Shown: positions 1 through 14,123 of the stretch, piece after piece
Position numbering within the stretch: position 1 is the first letter of the stretch
How the letters are laid out: each line of letters begins with the position of its first letter
Source: Paraphysomonas bandaiensis
Taxonomy: Eukaryota > Protista > Chrysophyceae
Length of the DNA stretch: 64,000 bases
Reading direction: 5' to 3'
Assembly: GCA_965644295.1 (NCBI GenBank)
Contig: CBFFRP010000323.1
Coordinates: forward strand, 1 to 64,000
Made by a program: the position numbers and the translations under genes
The notes under the pieces: generated by a model
Told to the model about the DNA's origin: nothing
What the model saw: the letters and a program-made list of their open reading frames with translations, nothing else
Databases searched by the model: none

Positions 1-211
1 TGGTGTTATAGTATGCAGTGTTTTGTGTACGGCTGTAGACTAGAAGCATAATTTCCTCTTACTAAAAGGAGTTCTGTAGCAACTACAAAGAGAACCTTGC
101 TTTCGACTACCTGTAGCGTAGACTGTGTAAAAGGCAACTGGGGTATTCCGTCCGTATACGATTAGCAACGTCCGTTAACAACCAGACCGAGTACCGCATA
201 CTTTCTCTACG
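1..211 (+). repeat. 5' LTR (partial)
   Basis: Aligns to 4765-4973; identity ends after ...CTTTCTCTACG. Confidence 0.93.
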
Positions 212-224
212 TAAGAGGAAATTA
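211..224 (+). promoter_or_regulatory. Putative self-priming primer-binding site, complementary to LTR nt 49-62
   Basis: GTAAGAGGAAATTA (211-224) is the exact reverse complement of TAATTTCCTCTTAC (49-62, also 4813-4826). No TGG-type or GGTTATGGGCCC-type PBS is present. Confidence 0.75.
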
Positions 225-231
225 GGAAAAT

Positions 232-3200
232 ATGAAGAAAAATGGGATCGAAAAACCCAAGAGGTTTGCAAGATATCCATCGCAATCAGCCAGAGATACA
301 TCGGACACAGTGCCGAAGTTGCGATATGGCGCAAACAGCAACCTGGCGACTTTCAAGCAGAAGATGGTAGTGGCAGCTATGGAGAAGTACGGAAACCTTG
401 CAAGACTGTTGGAACTCGACGAGTATTATGAGCCTGATCCAATCGAATTGAGTGATTACGATAAAAGAACAGATCCACTAGGCATACAGCTCGATCGAAT
501 GAAGAATAAGATCAAGACCAGGGATAGGCTGATATCTGAGATGGAAAACAACAGAACGCCATTCTACGGATATATGCTCAGACATTTAAGCAACGAGTCT
601 TTGGATGCAATCAAACTGTTAGACGAATACGAGCAAATAAACAGGGAAAAGGACCCTTTGTTGCTATGGCGGGCTATCAAAAAGACGCATAAGGTTGCGA
701 CTAACTCTAATGTCGAGAGAGTAAGGAAAGCAGAGACAAGGCGAAAGTATCAAGAGGCCAAACAAGGGCCATACGAGAGCATTGTTAGTTATAAAGAACG
801 ATTTGACTACCTACTCGAAGCATATAAAGATGTAGGGAATGCAGAGATGGAAGAGTCAGATATAGCAATGGACTTCTTCGAGGGTCTTGATGACACGAGG
901 TACGGCGAATTCAAGACGAATTATCTCAACGATCTCATGATGGGGACTCAATCTGCCCCAGATCATGTAAACGACGTATACGTAAAAGCATCTAAATTCA
1001 TGAGCCACAACAGAACACAGAAGTCGGGAGGCGGATCATCGTTCATGAGTAGGTCTAAAAACAACAAGGGTAAGAAATCGGGGGACCGGGATGACACAGC
1101 TGAGCAGCGCAGGAAGAATGACACGGAATCGAAAGGCAGCAACCGAGCCCAGAAAAAGAAGCCACTAATATGTTGGAGCTGCGGAGAACCAGGACACCGA
1201 ATGAATGAATGTCCCGACAGCAGCGATCAGGAACCGGAGAATAGAAAGTGCAAAACCACAATGCTGAATGCATTCACATCGGGGAGCGAGCCATTCCAAT
1301 GGTATGAAGTGTTGTTGGACAACCAGGCGGATGTCTCCGTGGTGCACCCGAGATTGCTGACAAACGTGAGACCGGCAACCAGAGGATGCTCCGTAGCAGG
1401 ACTATCAGGTCACGAGCTGGAATTGCCCAATGTAGGCGAGCTGGATCAATTCTTCACCTGTAAAACAGCTGATGAGCTAAGGGCGAGCGTGCTATGTCAG
1501 GCAGACGTGGAGGACATCTATGATGTGACCTACAAACAAGGAGAATCGTTCACTGTACACTTACCCAACAGCGACCTGACATTCTATCGAAGAAACAAAA
1601 TGTATGTGGCCGACATGCGTGACTGGGCGACAGCTCACGCCAATGTCACAACTGTAGCAGAGCGCGAAGCTCAGTACTCGAAGGTGGAAGTAGCGAGAGC
1701 GCGAGAGGCACGAGATCTGGTCCGAAACTCAGGTTTCGACTCCGAGCGAGATGCTGTAAGTTTAGTCAGTGATGGTAACATTACAGGGGTGCGACTCACC
1801 CCGAGAGACATAAGGAGAGCGTTCGATATCTACGGAAACCCATTCGAAGCCGTTAGGGGCAAGACGACTAGCAAAAAAGTCAGCCGACAATACGTGGATA
1901 CGGCACTCAAAGCGGAACAGCAGAAGGAGCAAAGGCTGTACACCGACATCTTTAATGTGAGACAGCAACCGTTCATGCTCACACTCGCGGAGCCGATGGG
2001 ACTGACTATTGTAGCAGCACTTGAAAACGAAACCACAGACCAGTTGGGATTGGCCCTACAAGAGCACGTAAATCTGTTACGAAGCTATGGATATATTCCA
2101 ACAATCGCTTACCTGGATCCACAACCGGGATTCAAAGCTTTGAGAGGCAAGATCACAGGGGTGGAGATCGACATCGCAGGAGCCGGAGACCACCTAGATA
2201 AGATAGACGGAAAAATCAGGCGTATTAAGGAAACAATACGTAGCGTGAATGCAGGTTTACCGTGGAATTTGCCTGACGCAAATGTCAAGGACCTCGTGAG
2301 ATACTCGAACAGTCGAATGAACTTGAGGAGGCCTTCCACCAATGGTTCTGCAGTAGCACCGCGAGTGGCACTGACTGGACGAAAGCCCGATTACAAAAAG
2401 GAATTATCTTTGGCTTTTGGGGACTACGTGGAGTGCTACGACCCCAAGATTAAAAGCAACAATGCTGAACAGTCCCGAACAGAGCCATGCATCGCATTAT
2501 ATCCCACAGGAAACGCGAACGGGAGTTGGATTTTCCTGAATATGAAAACGAACAAATACATCAGCAGAACGAATTGGCGAAAGATGATCACAACGCAGAT
2601 AGTCATCGATGCAGTGAACAGGATCACATCACTGCAAAACAATGGAAAGAAGTCGAACTCACCGGCCGGAAACAATGACGACGAAGGCCGCGTGACCAAA
2701 TATAGCGAAAGCGCACTGCAAGCCGAGACTGGCGAGAACGACATGACCGAAGCACCAAGAGAGCCCGATAAAAATGAGCAGGACGACACAACAGAAATTC
2801 CAGAACTGGTTGACGATCACGATGATGATGACGATGATGGAGGGAGTGACAAAGGGGTGCACGGGCAGGAGTCGAGTGTTGGAGCATCACTACAGCAGGG
2901 CAAAGAAGAGAGCCCCGCAACATTCAGTAGTCACGCACCTGACGACACAGGCGAATCGGAAATTACAGGGGTGGTAAACAATACATACAAAGTACCTCCA
3001 TCGGTCAAAGGACAGTCGGGACGGAGAGCTGCCGGCGCGTTGAGGAAGCCAGTGATGTACAGAGCCTATCACACCAGTGTAACACAGGGTTTAAGAGAAC
3101 ACGGTAACGAAGCGTACCTGGCGATAGTGCAAGAACTGAAGCAGCTGTTACATCACAAGAAAGCGATTGTCCCGGTACACAAGAGCGAGCTATCGAGGAC

Positions 3201-4692
3201 ACAGCTGAAGAGGACCATCAGATCTCTTATGTTCTTGAAGACCAAGTACGACGGACTGGGAAGATTCGAAAAGATCAAGGCGAGGCTGGTGGCAAACGGA
3301 GCCCAGCAAGATCGAAAACTTTACACCGACACGTCATCACCTACGGTAGCATTGCAATCAGTATTCACTTGTTTAGCTATAGCGGCGAAAGAAGGGAGAC
3401 ACATATCGACTGTTGACATTGGCGGCGCGTACCTGAATGCGGAGATGACCGGCGAGGAAGTGATCATGGAGCTGGAGCCCATGCTGGCGACGATTATGAA
3501 GAAGCTTGACCCCTCAATCCAACCTTTCATTGATGAGCGGGGGAGACTCCTAGTACGCCTGGATAAGGCATTATATGGATGTGTTCAAAGCGCGAGGCTT
3601 TGGTACAACACCATAAGAGCTTACCTGGAGTCAATCGGATTTGTGGCTAACACAGTGGACCAATGCGTTTTCAACAGGACGGCCAATGGCAGCCAGTGCA
3701 CGGTAACCCTACATGTGGACGACTTGTTAGTAATGTCGCAGGACAAGAGTGACACAGTGTGGCTGGTGGAACAGTTAAAAAAGCAGTATGGTGAGGTAAA
3801 GTACTGTGATGATAGCGACATGTCGTACATAGGTATGCATGTGAGTGTAGCCGACGGAAAGGCAGTGATATCGATGAAGGCCTACCTAGACGGGGTACTG
3901 GAAGAGGCAGCGGTCGCAGGTAGAGCAGCGTCTCCGGCGACATCCTCATTGTTTTCCCAGAGCGAAACTCAGAAATTGAGCAGAAAGGAGACCGCTAGTT
4001 TTCATTCCGTGGTGGCCAAGCTACTATACCTGGCGACAAGAGTGAGACCGGATATTCTGTTGAGCGTGGCTTACCTCGCCACCAAAGTGAAGAGCCCGAC
4101 GCACGAGGATCAACAGAAGGTGGAGCGCGTGTTGAAGTACCTCGCACAGACCAGTGACAAAGTCCTGCACCTGAGAATAGGGGAAGAAATGAGCGTAAGA
4201 TGTTTCATTGATGCGTCATTTGCTTTGCACACAGACGGAAAAGGTCATACCGGTGTGGTGGTTCAGGTCGGGGGAGCAACTGTGTTATGTAGGTCCACGA
4301 AGCAGCGTATCGTGACTAAGGACTCCACCGAATCAGAGTTGGTTGGCCTATCGGATATGTTTTCCTGTGCGATGAAGATACATGAGTTTATATGTGCGCA
4401 GGGTTACAAACTGGACCCACCTGTGGTGTACCAGGACAATATTTCGAACATCAGCCTCGTGACGAAGGGAGGAGGCAAATACAGGTCTAAATACCTACGC
4501 GTGAGACAAGCTTTGGTCAAAGAACAGCACGACAATGGTTGCATCAAGCTGGAGTACTTACCAACTGGGAAGATGTTGGCCGATGTGTTAACGAAGCCCC
4601 TTCAGGGCGAATTGTTTCGCTATCTGACATGTTGTATCGCAGGAAGCGGATACACATGCCACAGGGGTGCGAAGGAGAATACAGCGCAGTAG
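232..4692 (+). CDS. Gag-Pol polyprotein (Copia)
   Basis: Zinc knuckle CWSCGEPGHRMNEC; protease LLDNQADVS; integrase LYTD...YLD...IDGKIRRIKE; RT KARLVANG, KALYG, LHVDDLL; RNase H FIDASFA, TESE, YQDN, ADVLTK. No internal stops. Confidence 0.96.
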   Translation: MKKNGIEKPKRFARYPSQSARDTSDTVPKLRYGANSNLATFKQKMVVAAMEKYGNLARLLELDEYYEPDPIELSDYDKRTDPLGIQLDRMKNKIKTRDRLISEMENNRTPFYGYMLRHLSNESLDAIKLLDEYEQINREKDPLLLWRAIKKTHKVATNSNVERVRKAETRRKYQEAKQGPYESIVSYKERFDYLLEAYKDVGNAEMEESDIAMDFFEGLDDTRYGEFKTNYLNDLMMGTQSAPDHVNDVYVKASKFMSHNRTQKSGGGSSFMSRSKNNKGKKSGDRDDTAEQRRKNDTESKGSNRAQKKKPLICWSCGEPGHRMNECPDSSDQEPENRKCKTTMLNAFTSGSEPFQWYEVLLDNQADVSVVHPRLLTNVRPATRGCSVAGLSGHELELPNVGELDQFFTCKTADELRASVLCQADVEDIYDVTYKQGESFTVHLPNSDLTFYRRNKMYVADMRDWATAHANVTTVAEREAQYSKVEVARAREARDLVRNSGFDSERDAVSLVSDGNITGVRLTPRDIRRAFDIYGNPFEAVRGKTTSKKVSRQYVDTALKAEQQKEQRLYTDIFNVRQQPFMLTLAEPMGLTIVAALENETTDQLGLALQEHVNLLRSYGYIPTIAYLDPQPGFKALRGKITGVEIDIAGAGDHLDKIDGKIRRIKETIRSVNAGLPWNLPDANVKDLVRYSNSRMNLRRPSTNGSAVAPRVALTGRKPDYKKELSLAFGDYVECYDPKIKSNNAEQSRTEPCIALYPTGNANGSWIFLNMKTNKYISRTNWRKMITTQIVIDAVNRITSLQNNGKKSNSPAGNNDDEGRVTKYSESALQAETGENDMTEAPREPDKNEQDDTTEIPELVDDHDDDDDDGGSDKGVHGQESSVGASLQQGKEESPATFSSHAPDDTGESEITGVVNNTYKVPPSVKGQSGRRAAGALRKPVMYRAYHTSVTQGLREHGNEAYLAIVQELKQLLHHKKAIVPVHKSELSRTQLKRTIRSLMFLKTKYDGLGRFEKIKARLVANGAQQDRKLYTDTSSPTVALQSVFTCLAIAAKEGRHISTVDIGGAYLNAEMTGEEVIMELEPMLATIMKKLDPSIQPFIDERGRLLVRLDKALYGCVQSARLWYNTIRAYLESIGFVANTVDQCVFNRTANGSQCTVTLHVDDLLVMSQDKSDTVWLVEQLKKQYGEVKYCDDSDMSYIGMHVSVADGKAVISMKAYLDGVLEEAAVAGRAASPATSSLFSQSETQKLSRKETASFHSVVAKLLYLATRVRPDILLSVAYLATKVKSPTHEDQQKVERVLKYLAQTSDKVLHLRIGEEMSVRCFIDASFALHTDGKGHTGVVVQVGGATVLCRSTKQRIVTKDSTESELVGLSDMFSCAMKIHEFICAQGYKLDPPVVYQDNISNISLVTKGGGKYRSKYLRVRQALVKEQHDNGCIKLEYLPTGKMLADVLTKPLQGELFRYLTCCIAGSGYTCHRGAKENTAQ

Positions 4693-4973
4693 ATAGGAAG
4701 TGTTCTTTTCAGTTTAGTACTTGAAGTGACTGTATAAGATACGCATAGGGTACATAGGAGTGTATGGTGTAATATTATGCAGTGTTTTGTGTACGGCTGT
4801 AGACTAGAGGCATAATTTCCTCTTACTGATAAGTTCTGTAGTAACTATAAAGAGATCCTTGCTTTGACTACCTGTAGCGTAGACTGTGTAAAAAGGCAAC
4901 GGGGGTATTCCGTCCGTATACGATTAGCAACGTCCGTTAACAACCAGACCGAGTACCGCATACTTTCTCTACG
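4670..4973 (+). repeat. 3' LTR (start inferred at 4670 after CACAGGGGTG; alternative start 4701)
   Basis: 4765-4973 matches 1-211 directly. The start is inferred from the short purine-rich tract and the imperfect terminal inverted repeat CGAAGGAGAA...TTCTCTACG. Confidence 0.75.
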
Positions 4974-5055
4974 GAGACATAGACGGTATACAGGCCTGTA
5001 TTTATAATGTAACTCCTGGCTGCAGCAGAAGCCTGCAACAAGCTTCCAGTTCAGC

Positions 5056-5786
5056 ATGGCTCCACTCGTAGTTTAGTTCAGAACACATCACCGCACCTTG
5101 TATCATCTGAGAGTATGTGCGAGCAGAGCTTCATATGTGTGGCTATCGGCAGTCTCGGTGTTGAGTTCTTTGAAACGCATCGCTTCTTCTTCATGCTGTC
5201 GTGCTCAGTGTCTAGTTTCATATCCGCCATACTGCTATCAGTCGCCATATCTGGTGCATCTAATGACGACTCCGCTGTTATCGCATGCTCATGGGCATAC
5301 GGTAGTAGTGATGATGTGGACTCTTATGTCGGATTGAAGCGCTTTGTTACTATCACTAATAACGATGATGTAACGGGCGAATCTTGGGGTGATGTAGACT
5401 GTAACAACGAAAACTATTGCAATCGATGTCAAGACGCCGGGTTGAATAGTTTATATAGTGTTGCAGTTATATTTATCTTGAATGTTGTTTGTGGCGTTCA
5501 ACCATACTTTCGTATTGCCTCAGACAGAGATAGGAATATTCATAAAGTGATGCAGTTACTTTGCACAGGATTTTGCGTTTTTCTTGCTATTGCCTCTATT
5601 GGATCATTTTCAAACGAATGTTTTAACATTCTTCCAGAAGAGTTTGACTACTTGCATGGCCCAGGTTACTCTTGTTTGACAGCCGCTTTGGTTTTTAAAG
5701 CATTTGAGTTTTTATTCCATTTATGGGTTCCAGTGGAGCGAAAATATATGCCTGAGCGGATCTCCTCAGTTTTCGTCGATAAGTAG
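5056..5786 (+). CDS. Amastin/claudin-like four-TM protein
   Basis: Hydrophobic helices, W...YVGLK motif after TM1, Cys-rich loop (CNNENYCNRCQDAG), GPGY before the last helix. A probable intron at 5068-5126 joins MAPL to SFICVAIG in frame. Confidence 0.65.
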
Positions 5787-6987: not shown

Positions 6988-9655
6988 ATATTGAATGTCT
7001 AATTATCAGCAATAGGCGTTTAAAAGTCAGCACTCAACTAGCATTCAAATTTAACTAATTAGTGTTACATTGAAAATCTGATTATTAAGAAGCGCAAGCT
7101 TGTGCGTTGCCGCGACCAACCTAACAACTCGCGCGACACTATGCATAACATGACTCTCATCTAGTTACTATTGCATGCACCGACAAGTGCTCAACTATAC
7201 AACACGATTTAGTTAGCTACATGGGCATACGACGAGTTGCGTGTTTAAGCCGGATCATACGCTCCTGCCCAATCTACTTGTCCTAACACAAACAACTTGC
7301 GGTCGGTGTCTTCGGCATATGTCTCCTGTATATGCGGCAGATCTTTAGGGCCCTCTTCAAGGTGGTGTTCACAGCAGCAGGTAGTCTGGAAGGGAGAATA
7401 AAGTAGCTATAGCGCCGGGTCCTCCCACGGTCACGAAGCGGTCTCACTGGTGCAATTTTGCACACTGACGCATGAAACAGACATCTACCAAAATCTGTTA
7501 CAAATTCACGCTGACTCCAATGTCTTCCCTCCATTGTGTGCACTCATCCAGCACATGCATCCACCTTGCACTCTTCTCCCGAGTGACTTACACTAGTAGG
7601 AAACCGTGCACCTTCCCCGCTCGGATGAAAACCTACTAAGCAAGAATAACATAAAAGCACCACAAATGTACCTGACACTGCTTGGAGAACAGTGCCAGAG
7701 CCTTGATATAATCTCAATGACCTGGGTCAGGAGAAACCAAGACTAGGCAGTTGACGTGTGAGAAGACATGACAGGTCTAATCACATCATTGCCATTGCCA
7801 TGCATCCATGAGGAAAGTTTGACGCATTACCTCGGTCATTGGCCGGCCACACAGATACCGAATAATGTGAACTCATATACTCAGCATCAATCACTCAAAG
7901 CAAACGCAGGGAGCAAGCAGAATGTTGATATACCTGACATCTGCTGACTTCAGGTGTTTTGAGTTCTTAAGGTGAACATCCCGGATGCTTAACTTCAGCA
8001 GGCAGCCCAATACCCCGGTTACCCTTCTGGTGGGCCCTGTCCCGGATGCCCTTGAGGTGGGCCCATTCCCGGATGCCTGTTTATTCGTCAGGGCCCAAAG
8101 ACGTCTACACAAGTGACACTTATTAGTGTCCCTTGTACCACACAAGCATTTGGCTATGAGTGGGCAGAACAATATATCTGCTGACTATATAATATGCGGC
8201 TCACGTTAGTTTCCCGGAGAAATATCTCCGGTACTTATCCCCCAGAACACCACGAAAAGGTGCGAGTCCGACTTTGTTGAGGGTAACTAATTAGTGCTTA
8301 ACTCTGATATCCTACTATTGAGCGTTGCGAAAGCTGCTTGTGCGTCACCGCAAGCGCCAAGTATGCAACCACTTACACTCTATCTGCAAGCGCCGTGAGC
8401 AAGCAGAAGTTGATGTCCCTGACATCTGCTGACTTCAGGTCCATGCAATAACTGTATAAACAGCAGTCATCATCGTTATTTGTATAAAAACAATTTGACA
8501 TCAAGATTTTGTTTCTCAAAACAATTGATACAAACTATTCAGAAAATAAAATGTAAGAGCTGTACTATAAAAATTTGAAATTTTGAAAAACATTATTAAA
8601 TAGTTATATTTAATCACGGGCAATAAGGAGGCTATATCGTCCCGAGCTCAGAATTTTGAAACGAGAGCTAAAAGCTGGAGTTTTAAAATTTAGACAATGG
8701 ACGATATGCTACTCCTTATCCCTAGGTTAAATTGTAGCTTATATATCCTCATGATGTTGTTGAAAACTTAATATTAGATTGTATAGCTATTTTAGTAGCT
8801 TGCTTGCTGTAATAAGAAATTCGTGATTCCTGTGATTAACATTAAGATAACAAATGAGAATTCATATTGTTTCAAATGAATGGTATATATACTGGCTGTA
8901 TATGCTTTGGGAATAGAATTGCACTATAGATCAACTCAAACAACAAACCCCCTAACTTATATACATAATAGCTACAACAAATGCACTCCTACCACATACA
9001 TATGACTGTCAATATCATAATTAAGATAGAAGTTAGCTTCTGTTGAACCGAATGTTGAAGTTGAATGTCTATATTTGCCCGACGCTGATATGAGTGCTCT
9101 GTTGAGACAAAATCAGGTCAAAAAAGGCTTTTTTTGATACAAATGGGGATAGTATATAATCCCACCGTACACACGAACCCCACCACTCCTACACGCAGGA
9201 ACATATCACCGCCCCGCATGAAACCTTCAGGCCCTCGACCGCGGCGCCGCCTCCGACAACTCTACCTATGCCTGAGGCCCAAACGGTGCACTGAGACAAC
9301 GCCACATTCCACCTCACCACCCACCTCTCAGCACACACATCTAGCACTCGGTACACTCAGGGCCTTAATATAGAACCATGTACCTCAGAGCCTGGCGGAA
9401 TCTCATCCCAAGGGGAGACCCCTGATAACACCCGCCAGTGAGTCCTAGGACACACGATCATTGGCGAAACTCACAATCAACATTAAGAACGGAAGTGGTC
9501 GCACCTTGGTGCTTGCGGCGCTAAATAGTAGGATAATTGAATTTGTACTGATTAGTTATCGGTAGAGGTCTAAATAGTATGTCTAGCATTCAACTAGCCA
9601 CTACATTGGTGCAGGTTTTTAACGCCTATTGCTAAATAATAAGACTTTCAATATA
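6988..9655. mobile_element. Degenerate modular repeat element(s), possibly derived from a tyrosine-recombinase retroelement
   Basis: Modules recur at 33260-34625, 42300-42465, 49015-49470 and 49940-50045. Two modules are internally duplicated, and the outer ends are mutually inverted. Confidence 0.55.
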
Positions 9656-11176: not shown

Positions 11177-11316
11177 GGGACTCTATTGTCTCTAAAACAT
11201 GCTGTACTTACATAAACAAACTCATACAGTGCTCACCGCTTTTGTATTTAGGAATTCCAGGCTGCATATCAAGCACAGAGCGAGAACATGTGCGTGTACA
11301 ACTCCAGTATCTGTGA

Positions 11317-12894
11317 ATGTATGTATGTATGTATGTATGTATGTATGTATGTATGTATGTATGTATGTATGTATGTATGTATGTATGTATGTATGTATGT
11401 ATGTATGTATGTATGTATGTATGTATGTATGTATGTATGTATGTATGTATGTATGTATGTATGTATGTATGTATGTATGTATGTATGTATGTATGTATGT
11501 ATGTATGTATGTATGTATGTATGTATGTATGTATGTATGTATGTATGTATGTATGTATGTATGTATGTATGTATGTATGTATGTATGTATGTATGTATGT
11601 ATGTATGTATGTATGTATGTATGTATGTATGTATGAATGTATGTATGTATGTAGGTATGTATGTATGTATGTATGTATGTATGTATGTATGTATGTATGT
11701 ATGTATGTATGTATGTATGTATGTATGTATGTATGTATGTATGTATGTATGTATGTATGTATGTATGTATGTATGTATGTATGTATGTATGTATGTATGT
11801 ATGTATGTATGTATGTATGTATGTATGTATGTATGTATGTATGTATGTATGTATGTATGTATGTATGCAGGTTTGTATGTATGTATGTATGTATGTATGT
11901 ATGTATGTATGTATGTATGTATGTATGTATGTATGTATGTATGTATGTATGTATGTATGTATGTATGTATGTATGTACGTATGTATGTATGTATGTATGT
12001 ATGTATGTATGTATGTATGTATGTATGTATGTATGTATGTATGTATGTATGTATGTATGTATGTATGTATGTATGTATGTATGTATGTATGTATGTATGT
12101 ATGTATGTATGTATGTATGTATGTATGTATGTATGTATGTATGTATGTATGTATGTATGTATGTATGTATGTATGTATGTATGTATGTATGTATGTATGT
12201 ATGTATGTATGTATGTATGTATGTATGTATGTATGTATGTATGTATGTATGTATGTATGTATGTATGTATGTATGTATGTATGTATGTATGTATGTATGT
12301 ATGTATGTATGTATGTATGTATGTATGTATGTATGTATGTATGTATGTATGTATGTATGTATGTATGTATGTATGTATGTATGTATGTATGTATGTATTA
12401 TGTATGTATGTATGTATGTATGTATGTATGTATGTATGTATGTATGTATGTATGTATGTATGTATGTATGTATGTATGTATGTATGTATGTATGTATGTA
12501 TGTATGTATGTATGTATGTATGTATGTATGTATGTATGTATGTATGTATGTATGTATGTATGTATGTATGTATGTATGTATGTATGTATGTATGTATGTA
12601 TGTATGTATGTATGTATGTATGTATGTATGTATGTATGTATGTATGTATGTATGTATGTATGTATGTATGTATGTATGTATGTATGTATGTATGTATGTA
12701 TGTATGTATGTATGTATGTATGTATGTATGTATGTATGTATGTATGTATGTATGTATGTATGTATGTATGTATGTATGTATGTATGTATGTATGTATGTA
12801 TGTATGTATGTATGTATGTATGTATGTATGTATGTATGTATGTATGTATGTATGTATGTATGTATGTATGTATGTATGTATGTATGTATGTATG
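11317..12894. repeat. (ATGT)n tetranucleotide microsatellite, about 1.58 kb
   Basis: Near-perfect array with only about five interruptions (near 11636, 11654, 11867-11875, 11978, 12398). Confidence 0.99.
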
Positions 12895-13014
12895 ATGATG
12901 TTGTGTATCTTCGCAGTGTGTGGCAGTTTGGTTGTGCGAGCATTGCTCCTCAATCTCTTTTTTATTCTGCGAACTTCCAAACACGCTACTTATTCTGGTT
13001 CCACTTTGTATCAG

Positions 13015-14123
13015 ATGTCTGTTTCTCGAATTGCTGTGTTTTTGGTGATAGTGAGTGTGCTGTATGGGTGTCTGCATAGTGTATTGAGGAAGGAGTATAG
13101 GGTGCACAGTGAGGGAATCGTTTTGCTCACAGGGGCCTCCACTGGCATAGGCCGACATGCTGCCGAACACCTCGCGGATAAAGGATACACTGTATTCTGC
13201 GGTGTCCGGAAACAATCCGATGCGGACCGAATCGCATCGCTCAACAACAAACACATGATTCCCGTTTTGATGGACGTCACCGATCATGACTCTTGCGTCT
13301 CAGCGATTGAAAAAGTCAGAGAATCATCTGCATCAACTGGACTTCCATTCGTTGCTTTAGTGAATAATGCTGGAATCAGTCGCAAAATTGTTGCGGAATT
13401 TCACGATCTCGAGGATGCTAGAAAGGTATTCGAGACTAATTTCTTTGGTGCTGTAGGTTAGTATCATAGGCTGGTTTTATTCCGAAACTCATTGTATGCG
13501 GTATATGTAGATTTGACTCAGCTTTCGCTGCCGTTATTGCGGGAGAGTAGGGGACGGGTAATTATGATATCAAGTCTCTCTGGGCGTGTTGGTAAGTATC
13601 TGTGTGGTCGATCGCTAGTGTAGTAACCAACCTCGTCATCGAATACAGCTACTCCCATGTCCAGCATATATGCAGCTTCTAAGTTTGCTCTTGAAGCCTT
13701 CTCCGATAGTCTCAGGCGTGAAGTGGCTGGCTTCAATATTTCAGTTTCTATTATCGAACCGGCGTATGTGGCTACGCAGATATTTGAAAGTAACAGCGCT
13801 GCATCATCGAAGGTGTGTATATCCCATTACCACAGGCTAACATCATATTAAATAAATCGATGCAGGTGTATGAGGATCTTGATAGCCCGGCCCGCACTCT
13901 GTACCCATCCCTACATTCGGAAGAATATTTTGCAAAGCGTGCAGAAGTTATATCGAAGGCAAGCCCCGCAACTGTCACTTCTGAGGCTATTGCTCACGCA
14001 ATATCTTCTGCCACACCTCAAACGAGATATGTGGTCGCTAATGTCAATGGTCTACCGGCTGTTGTCATGGATTGGCTACAGTGGGCTCTACCTGATAGGT
14101 TGGTCGACATCCTTGCAAACTAG
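13015..14123 (+). CDS. Short-chain dehydrogenase/reductase (retinol/17-beta-HSD-like), spliced
   Basis: [22 protein letters not shown] motifs; N-terminal hydrophobic anchor; three short introns. Confidence 0.92.

Follow-up and report, generated by a model that had tools for sequence, protein, structure and literature searches.

The element at the start of this window (the whole 64-kb stretch analyzed, which is the first 64 kb of contig C323 from a genome of 62.5 Mb in 669 contigs) raises the question of how a Copia retrotransposon begins reverse transcription when no tRNA primer site follows its 5' LTR. The first-pass annotation had proposed that the element primes from its own transcript, in the manner of Tf1. 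Here, we examined the pairing behind this proposal in the window, in other copies in the same genome, and in relatives from marine metagenomes. Tf1-like self-priming by the element's own RNA is very likely on this comparison (probability of about 0.8), a reading supported by covariation in 11 families, by a subfamily with a matched C>T and G>A pair, and by the lack of a match in any sampled tRNA.

Anatomy of the element

Because the window begins at the contig end, its 5' LTR is missing 95 nt at its start; all other copies share the 30 nt preceding the position of window nt 1, indicating that the LTR continues upstream. The limits of the complete 3' LTR were set by homology with other copies (Table 1). 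The sequence at the junction of the 5' LTR and the internal region is a perfect reverse complement of a segment within the LTR (14/14 pairs), as originally described. The window contains three copies of this 14-mer (at 49, at 211 on the minus strand, and at 4813) against an expectation of 0.02, and a triple occurrence was reached by 0 of 100 shuffles.

Two details of the first-pass annotation required correction. "LTR nt 49-62" reflects window numbering on a partial LTR; in full-length numbering, the 14-mer is LTR nt 144 to 157, and the CA before it is LTR nt 142 to 143. In addition, G211 is the last base of the LTR, already inside the duplex, and not the first base beyond it. Other elements of the description held: gag starts 20 nt past the LTR end, and TGG is absent directly after the 5' LTR. 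The 14-mer is also truly unchanged in both LTRs, although alone this says little, given an estimated chance probability of ~0.4 with an LTR divergence of ~6%.

Table 1. Coordinates of the element's features within the window
Feature	Position	Strand	Remarks
5' LTR, partial	1..211	+	Direct repeat of 4765-4973; ends at G211
CA dinucleotide	47-48	+	Initiator-like; proposed RNA 5' end
Proposed self-primer segment	47..62	+	49-62 (TAATTTCCTCTTAC) paired in the window copy; whole 16 nt (CATAATTTCCTCTTAC) paired in sister subfamilies
Candidate primer-binding site (GTAAGAGGAAATTA)	211..224	+	Last LTR base and next 13 nt; complement of 49-62
Single gag-pol ORF, 1486 aa	232..4692	+	Reaches 23 nt into the 3' LTR
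Polypurine tract (CACAGGGGTG)	4660..4669	+	Directly before the 3' LTR
Complete 3' LTR, 304 nt	4670..4973	+	Termini CG...CG
3' LTR copy of primer segment	4813..4826	+	
Probable 3' half of 5-bp target-site duplication, GAGAC	4974..4978	+	By analogy with other copies; 5' half off the contig

The two window LTRs (1 to 211 versus 4765 to 4973) are only ~94% alike, with the divergence concentrated within the first 140 nt. The 5' copy is similar to the LTR of L004 and the 3' copy to the 5' LTRs of L002 and L003, a pattern that points to an older insertion or to a recombinant of two subfamilies. Further along the window (11208 to 13461), long ORFs of 470 to 714 aa overlap on both strands, probably marking a compositionally biased or repetitive stretch.

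Copies within the genome

The sister copy L031 (C324:9000-15500) is complete, with 287-nt LTRs at 722 to 1008 and 5392 to 5678, a flanking target duplication of GATTC, and ACAGGGGTG before its 3' LTR. The same ACAGGGGTG precedes the 3' LTR in 12/12 copies. Matching 5-bp target duplications were found in 10 of the 12 copies analyzed; one of the other two sits in a (CATA)n repeat with ambiguous phase, and the other is rearranged. The LTR termini, CG...CG, were fixed from 12 copies with target duplications. Most copies analyzed have identical LTRs and intact ORFs of 1460 to 1467 aa, indicating a young family, and one that is probably active.

About 5 of the 12 full copies (L076, L078, L079, L080, and L083; also L029) lie inside (CATA)n/(TATG)n microsatellites, with CATAC as a frequent target duplication, which suggests a target preference. 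At L034 (C107:32000-36000), positions 1470 to 2161 form a palindrome in which LTR nt 1 to 144 are joined to the reverse complement of the site plus LTR. Its junction coincides exactly with the 16-nt inverted repeat, and the inversion extends to the genomic flanks. We considered the L027/L034 palindrome as a "snap-back fossil" of reverse transcription and ruled this out, since the palindrome includes genomic flanks; these indicate a template switch at the 16-nt inverted repeat, whether in vivo, during amplification, or in assembly.

Assignment to Ty1/copia

The polyprotein carries a CCHC knuckle at aa 314, an integrase fold at ~aa 565 to 805, and a reverse transcriptase domain at aa 999 to 1230. 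The last of these matches Pfam RVT_2 (PF07727; E = 2e-27; E = 1e-28 on the close relative P0001). The region from aa 380 to 960 had no match in Pfam (rve included) or in a PDB sequence search. An AlphaFold model of this region reached a pLDDT of 80 to 93 over model residues 185 to 425, and Foldseek matched the model to the retroviral integrase core plus C-terminal domain (E = 5e-10; probability, 1.00). The resulting order, gag-integrase-reverse transcriptase, is that of Copia. The element is a Ty1/copia retrotransposon by its RVT_2 domain, its integrase upstream of the reverse transcriptase, its 5-bp target duplications, and its polypurine tract.

The LTRs of the window clade end in CG...CG in place of the usual TG...CA, termini that are common in Ty1/copia but not defining. 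In distant relatives, the LTRs of L086 and L088 end in ...CA, and those of L087 have TG...CA. The integrase triad of the window element reads D-D-D (aa 572/629/659; window ~1945 to 2210), and the HHCC finger is absent. The third triad residue is D in the CG...CG clade (KIDGK) versus E in the relatives at 30 to 32% identity (VAESK). Since D-D-D occurs in the CG...CG clade and E in the ...CA-ended relatives, the changes in the triad and in the LTR ends go together.

Covariation of the LTR segment and the site

A protein search returned 257 relatives, of which almost all lie on contigs from marine metagenomes, together with one Chaetoceros transcript. The covariation set consisted of 11 families (the window family and ten fetched from contigs; Table 2) from 98% down to 30% polyprotein identity; as the window, L031, and L067 families are close kin, these represent only ~8 or 9 independent lineages. 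Pairs were counted by script, with the 3' end of the primer and the first site base as anchors, a MAFFT alignment having set the arms out of register. LTR ends were taken from the 5-bp target duplications in 12 copies and from LTR pairs in relatives.

Table 2. LTR segments and sites in the ten families compared with the window element
Family	Polyprotein identity	LTR segment	Site	Paired length
L031	75%	CATAATTTCCTCTTAC	GTAAGAGGAAATTATG	16 nt
L067	68%	CATAATTTTCTCTTAC	GTAAGAGAAAATTATG	16 nt
L068	59%	CATAATTTTCTATCAC	GTGATAGAAAATTATG	16 nt
L069	47%	TAATATAGTTTTAC	Its complement	14 nt
L071	44%	CTTTTTGGTTAATAC	Its complement	15 nt
L072	42%	CTTATTTGCTATAAC	Its complement	15 nt
L073	40%	CTATTTTGCTTTTAC	Its complement	15 nt
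L086, L087, L088	30-32%	Different letters again		16, 14, 15 nt

An LTR/site duplex of 14 to 16 nt was kept in all 11 families. Watson-Crick pairs filled 154/154 cells (14 positions by 11 families), and all 14 duplex positions had changed on both sides, with 2 to 4 pair types each. Control registers slid by 1 to 3 nt were paired in 69 to 76 of the 154 cells (45 to 49%). The first-pass annotation had looked to covariation in relatives to judge its proposal, and the outcome is strongly positive. In a cross-test of eight families, each site matched its own element over 14 to 16 nt versus 6 to 11 nt in families with other primer letters; the window and L031 families share a core and cross-matched at 14 to 16 nt. 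Shuffled sites never gave a match as long as that observed. Within the genome, where plus and minus matches of LTR and site lie ~156 nt apart, a variant subfamily combines TAATTTTCTCTTAC (C>T) in the LTR with a G>A change in the site, without exception among the copies listed. Two exact-pattern scans of contigs from JGI metagenomes yielded only chance matches and an already known contig.

In the established model of reverse transcription, the primer serves as the template for the plus-strand copy of the site. Were the primer the element's own LTR segment, plus-strand synthesis would copy it into the new site, so that a change in the segment would be passed on and the two would always match. 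The position of the duplex is also what self-priming would predict: it starts at the last LTR base in 10/11 families and one base past the LTR in the eleventh (L087), and we count this in favor of self-priming because minus-strand synthesis must begin at this point to create the LTR edge.

A stem this well conserved could instead have a structural or regulatory function in the leader (gag translation control, packaging, or dimerization), with priming by other, unrecognized means. The placement of the gag start suits translational control, since the ATG forms the last three bases of the 16-nt site, inside the duplex, in three subfamilies (L031 1008-1023 and the equivalents in L067 and L068) and lies within 20 nt of the site in most other families. 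However, a structural stem would have no need to begin at the LTR edge as consistently as this one does, and the 0 to 20 nt between LTR and gag contain no other candidate site. Moreover, a role in translation control could exist alongside self-priming rather than in its place. We consider a purely structural role very improbable and self-priming the better account of the stem.

One relative shows an unusual 3' end. In L073 (40% identity; ~7700 to 7734), the 3' LTR ends 5 nt after the primer segment. This short LTR could be a deletion or an aberrant copy that ends near the proposed RNA 5' region.

Comparison with host tRNAs

A different possibility is that a host tRNA, a tRNA half, or another cellular RNA primes the element and that the LTR complement is coincidental. 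Host tRNAs were sampled with an Rfam tRNA scan, in which 63 of ~2500 first-look candidates were scored, and with ARAGORN, which gave ~35 distinct tRNAs on 30 fetched loci. The first-pass annotation had noted no tRNA-derived site, and this stood up in the sample: the sites matched nothing inside the ~35 tRNAs, and the longest matches, 9 to 10 nt, were in flanks. Exact matches to the 14-mer elsewhere in the genome were LTR/site pairs or lone LTR copies, none of them at a scored tRNA locus, and single-mismatch singletons were about as frequent as in a reversed-pattern control.

The comparison covers a sample of the host tRNA set, which leaves a host primer some room. Nevertheless, each family's site is different and matches its own LTR, leaving little room for a host RNA primer: a different fragment of host RNA would have had to be copied into the LTR of each family. 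Together with the absent TGG and the lack of matches at sampled and scored tRNA loci, this makes a host primer scarcely credible.

Proposed priming mechanism and transcription start

For self-priming, we infer the following course. Transcription would start at the CA just before the LTR segment, and the first 15 to 16 nt of the RNA would fold back ~150 nt onto the site that starts with the last LTR base. Cleavage by the element's RNase H directly behind the conserved ...AC (window nt 62) would then provide the 3'-OH from which reverse transcriptase would extend through U5. Predicted leader folds from three families are consistent with this course, the minimum-energy and centroid structures both closing the primer/site stem (z-scores of -2.3, -4.4, and -3.4). 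The context at the predicted cut, AC/TAA (the slash marks the cut), is conserved in most families and is at most suggestive of such a cut.

The proposed start at the CA bordering the segment has circumstantial support. In 11/11 families, the edge of the duplex lies within one base of (Y)CA (gCA, cCA, or tCA), which resembles the usual initiator motif, YYA(+1). The distance from the primer segment to the LTR end is fairly constant (94 to 148 nt), whereas the upstream part of the LTR varies from 104 to 383 nt, as expected of R-U5 and U3, respectively, if the segment marks the U3/R border.

Alternatively, the primer may still derive from the LTR segment while the 5' end of the genomic RNA lies farther upstream (e.g., ~30 nt past the TATAAGA at 4733). 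In that case, the primer would be freed by two cuts or act in trans, from a second packaged RNA or from short promoter-proximal transcripts. In the window family, this TATAAGA precedes the segment by 78 nt, and across families no TATA box was found at a fixed distance (-30) upstream of the segment. Against this, the TATAAGA is not conserved in distant families, and both the universal (Y)CA at the duplex edge and the contrast between variable upstream and fairly constant downstream LTR parts favor a start at the segment itself. An upstream start is therefore unlikely, and we retain the CA as the proposed RNA 5' end.

Two polyA metatranscriptomes yielded no assembled contig over U5, the site, or the gag start, and contigs cannot in any case show RNA starts. 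Within U5, the starting points of three Logan contigs of a 98% relative vary and are uninformative. The ends of contigs at position 916 of L031 do not mark a polyA site, as they fall on a subfamily SNP bubble.

Spliced antisense RNA across pol

Assembled contigs over the pol region of L031 (2216 to 5142, homologous to window ~1430 to 4460) skip ten segments of 46 to 112 nt. The skipping was seen in four runs from three or more studies: two polyA metatranscriptomes, one cDNA metatranscriptome, and one organism-labeled run. The skipped segments are bounded by CT..AC on the plus strand, so that on the minus strand they read as GT..AG introns. Spliced copies in DNA were ruled out, since two junction 26-mers are absent from the genome, indicating RNA splicing. 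A ten-intron spliced antisense RNA thus spans pol of the L031 subfamily.

In both polyA metatranscriptomes, the depth of intron-containing bins equaled the exon share (2.9 versus 7.54 × 67/174 and 4.08 versus 10.6 × 67/174). Because exons alone account for this depth, the assemblies contain no unspliced or sense form at these places. We also ruled out an antisense protein-coding gene, the spliced RNA having no ORF above 120 aa. The window copy keeps 9/10 antisense donors and ~6/10 acceptors. The antisense strand has 8 strong donor-like motifs (AGGTRNG), and the sense strand has 1 to 2.

Relation to known systems

In Tf1 of Schizosaccharomyces pombe, bases 1 to 11 of the RNA anneal to the site, and RNase H cleavage falls between bases 11 and 12 (PMC7175516). 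Tj1 and Tcn1, Gypsy elements like it, are predicted self-priming relatives (PMC7175516; Tj1 in PMC4600332). As in Tf1/Tf2 and the Tf1/sushi group, the site beside the 5' LTR of the window element complements its own LTR, and there is no tRNA site. The window element differs from Tf1 in its duplex of 14 to 16 nt rather than 11, in its CG...CG termini, and in that its start and cut are proposed only. Furthermore, the Tf1/sushi group is Ty3/gypsy, with the order reverse transcriptase-RNase H-integrase, whereas here integrase precedes RVT_2; the element is therefore not a member by descent.

Within Copia, the closest parallel is the plant Ty1/copia TAR lineage (Houba and Osr-1), for which self-priming was predicted by Neumann et al. 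2019, citing an earlier Houba/Osr-1 proposal (PMC6317226). The plant Copia proposals that the first-pass annotation had mentioned are thus found in the literature. TAR elements likewise lack a tRNA site, and their self-priming is likewise predicted from sequence; in contrast, the host here is a marine stramenopile, with relatives on marine metagenome contigs and in a Chaetoceros transcript. Drosophila copia, Osser, Bryco, and Bianca use half-tRNA priming, with sites that match an internal portion of tRNA-iMet or tRNA-Ile and do not vary between families (PMC6317226). They share with the window element a nonstandard primer and a site without TGG, but the site here differs by family and matches its own LTR. 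Fungal GalEa elements are also Copia without a tRNA site; their authors described a "conserved hairpin site" and found no LTR complement (PMC5445492), whereas the LTR complement here is perfect. The diatom CoDi elements are stramenopile Copia as well, and the Chaetoceros transcript is a 38% relative; the CoDi paper (Maumus et al. 2009) contains no analysis of primer-binding sites or primers. For diatoms, stramenopiles, and oomycetes, a full-text literature search turned up no description of self-priming.

Tf1, a Gypsy element, is the sole case in which self-priming has been proven; for Copia, there are sequence-based predictions in plants. Against this background, the element is a well-supported new example of self-priming rather than a new principle, and it very probably works like Tf1. 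A wider joint reading is tentative and, taken as a whole, somewhat doubtful. In it, self-priming would be ancestral and universal in a large, old marine stramenopile Copia clade (at least 30% polyprotein identity) and independent of TAR. The duplex, by hiding or abutting the gag start, would act as a switch between translation and reverse transcription. One subclade would have changed its triad from D-D-E to D-D-D along with its LTR ends from ...CA to ...CG. Finally, the main polyadenylated RNA of the element in the sea would be the ten-intron antisense, which may control the element.

Such elements will be missed or misplaced by annotation tools that require a tRNA site and TG...CA ends. As a natural series of covariation, the clade is unusually clean, its 11 families showing changes on both sides at every duplex position. 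Its young copies with identical LTRs and its abundance in ocean metagenomes make it a good study system. It is suited to asking how often LTR elements gave up tRNA primers, and whether within Copia this happened once or several times.
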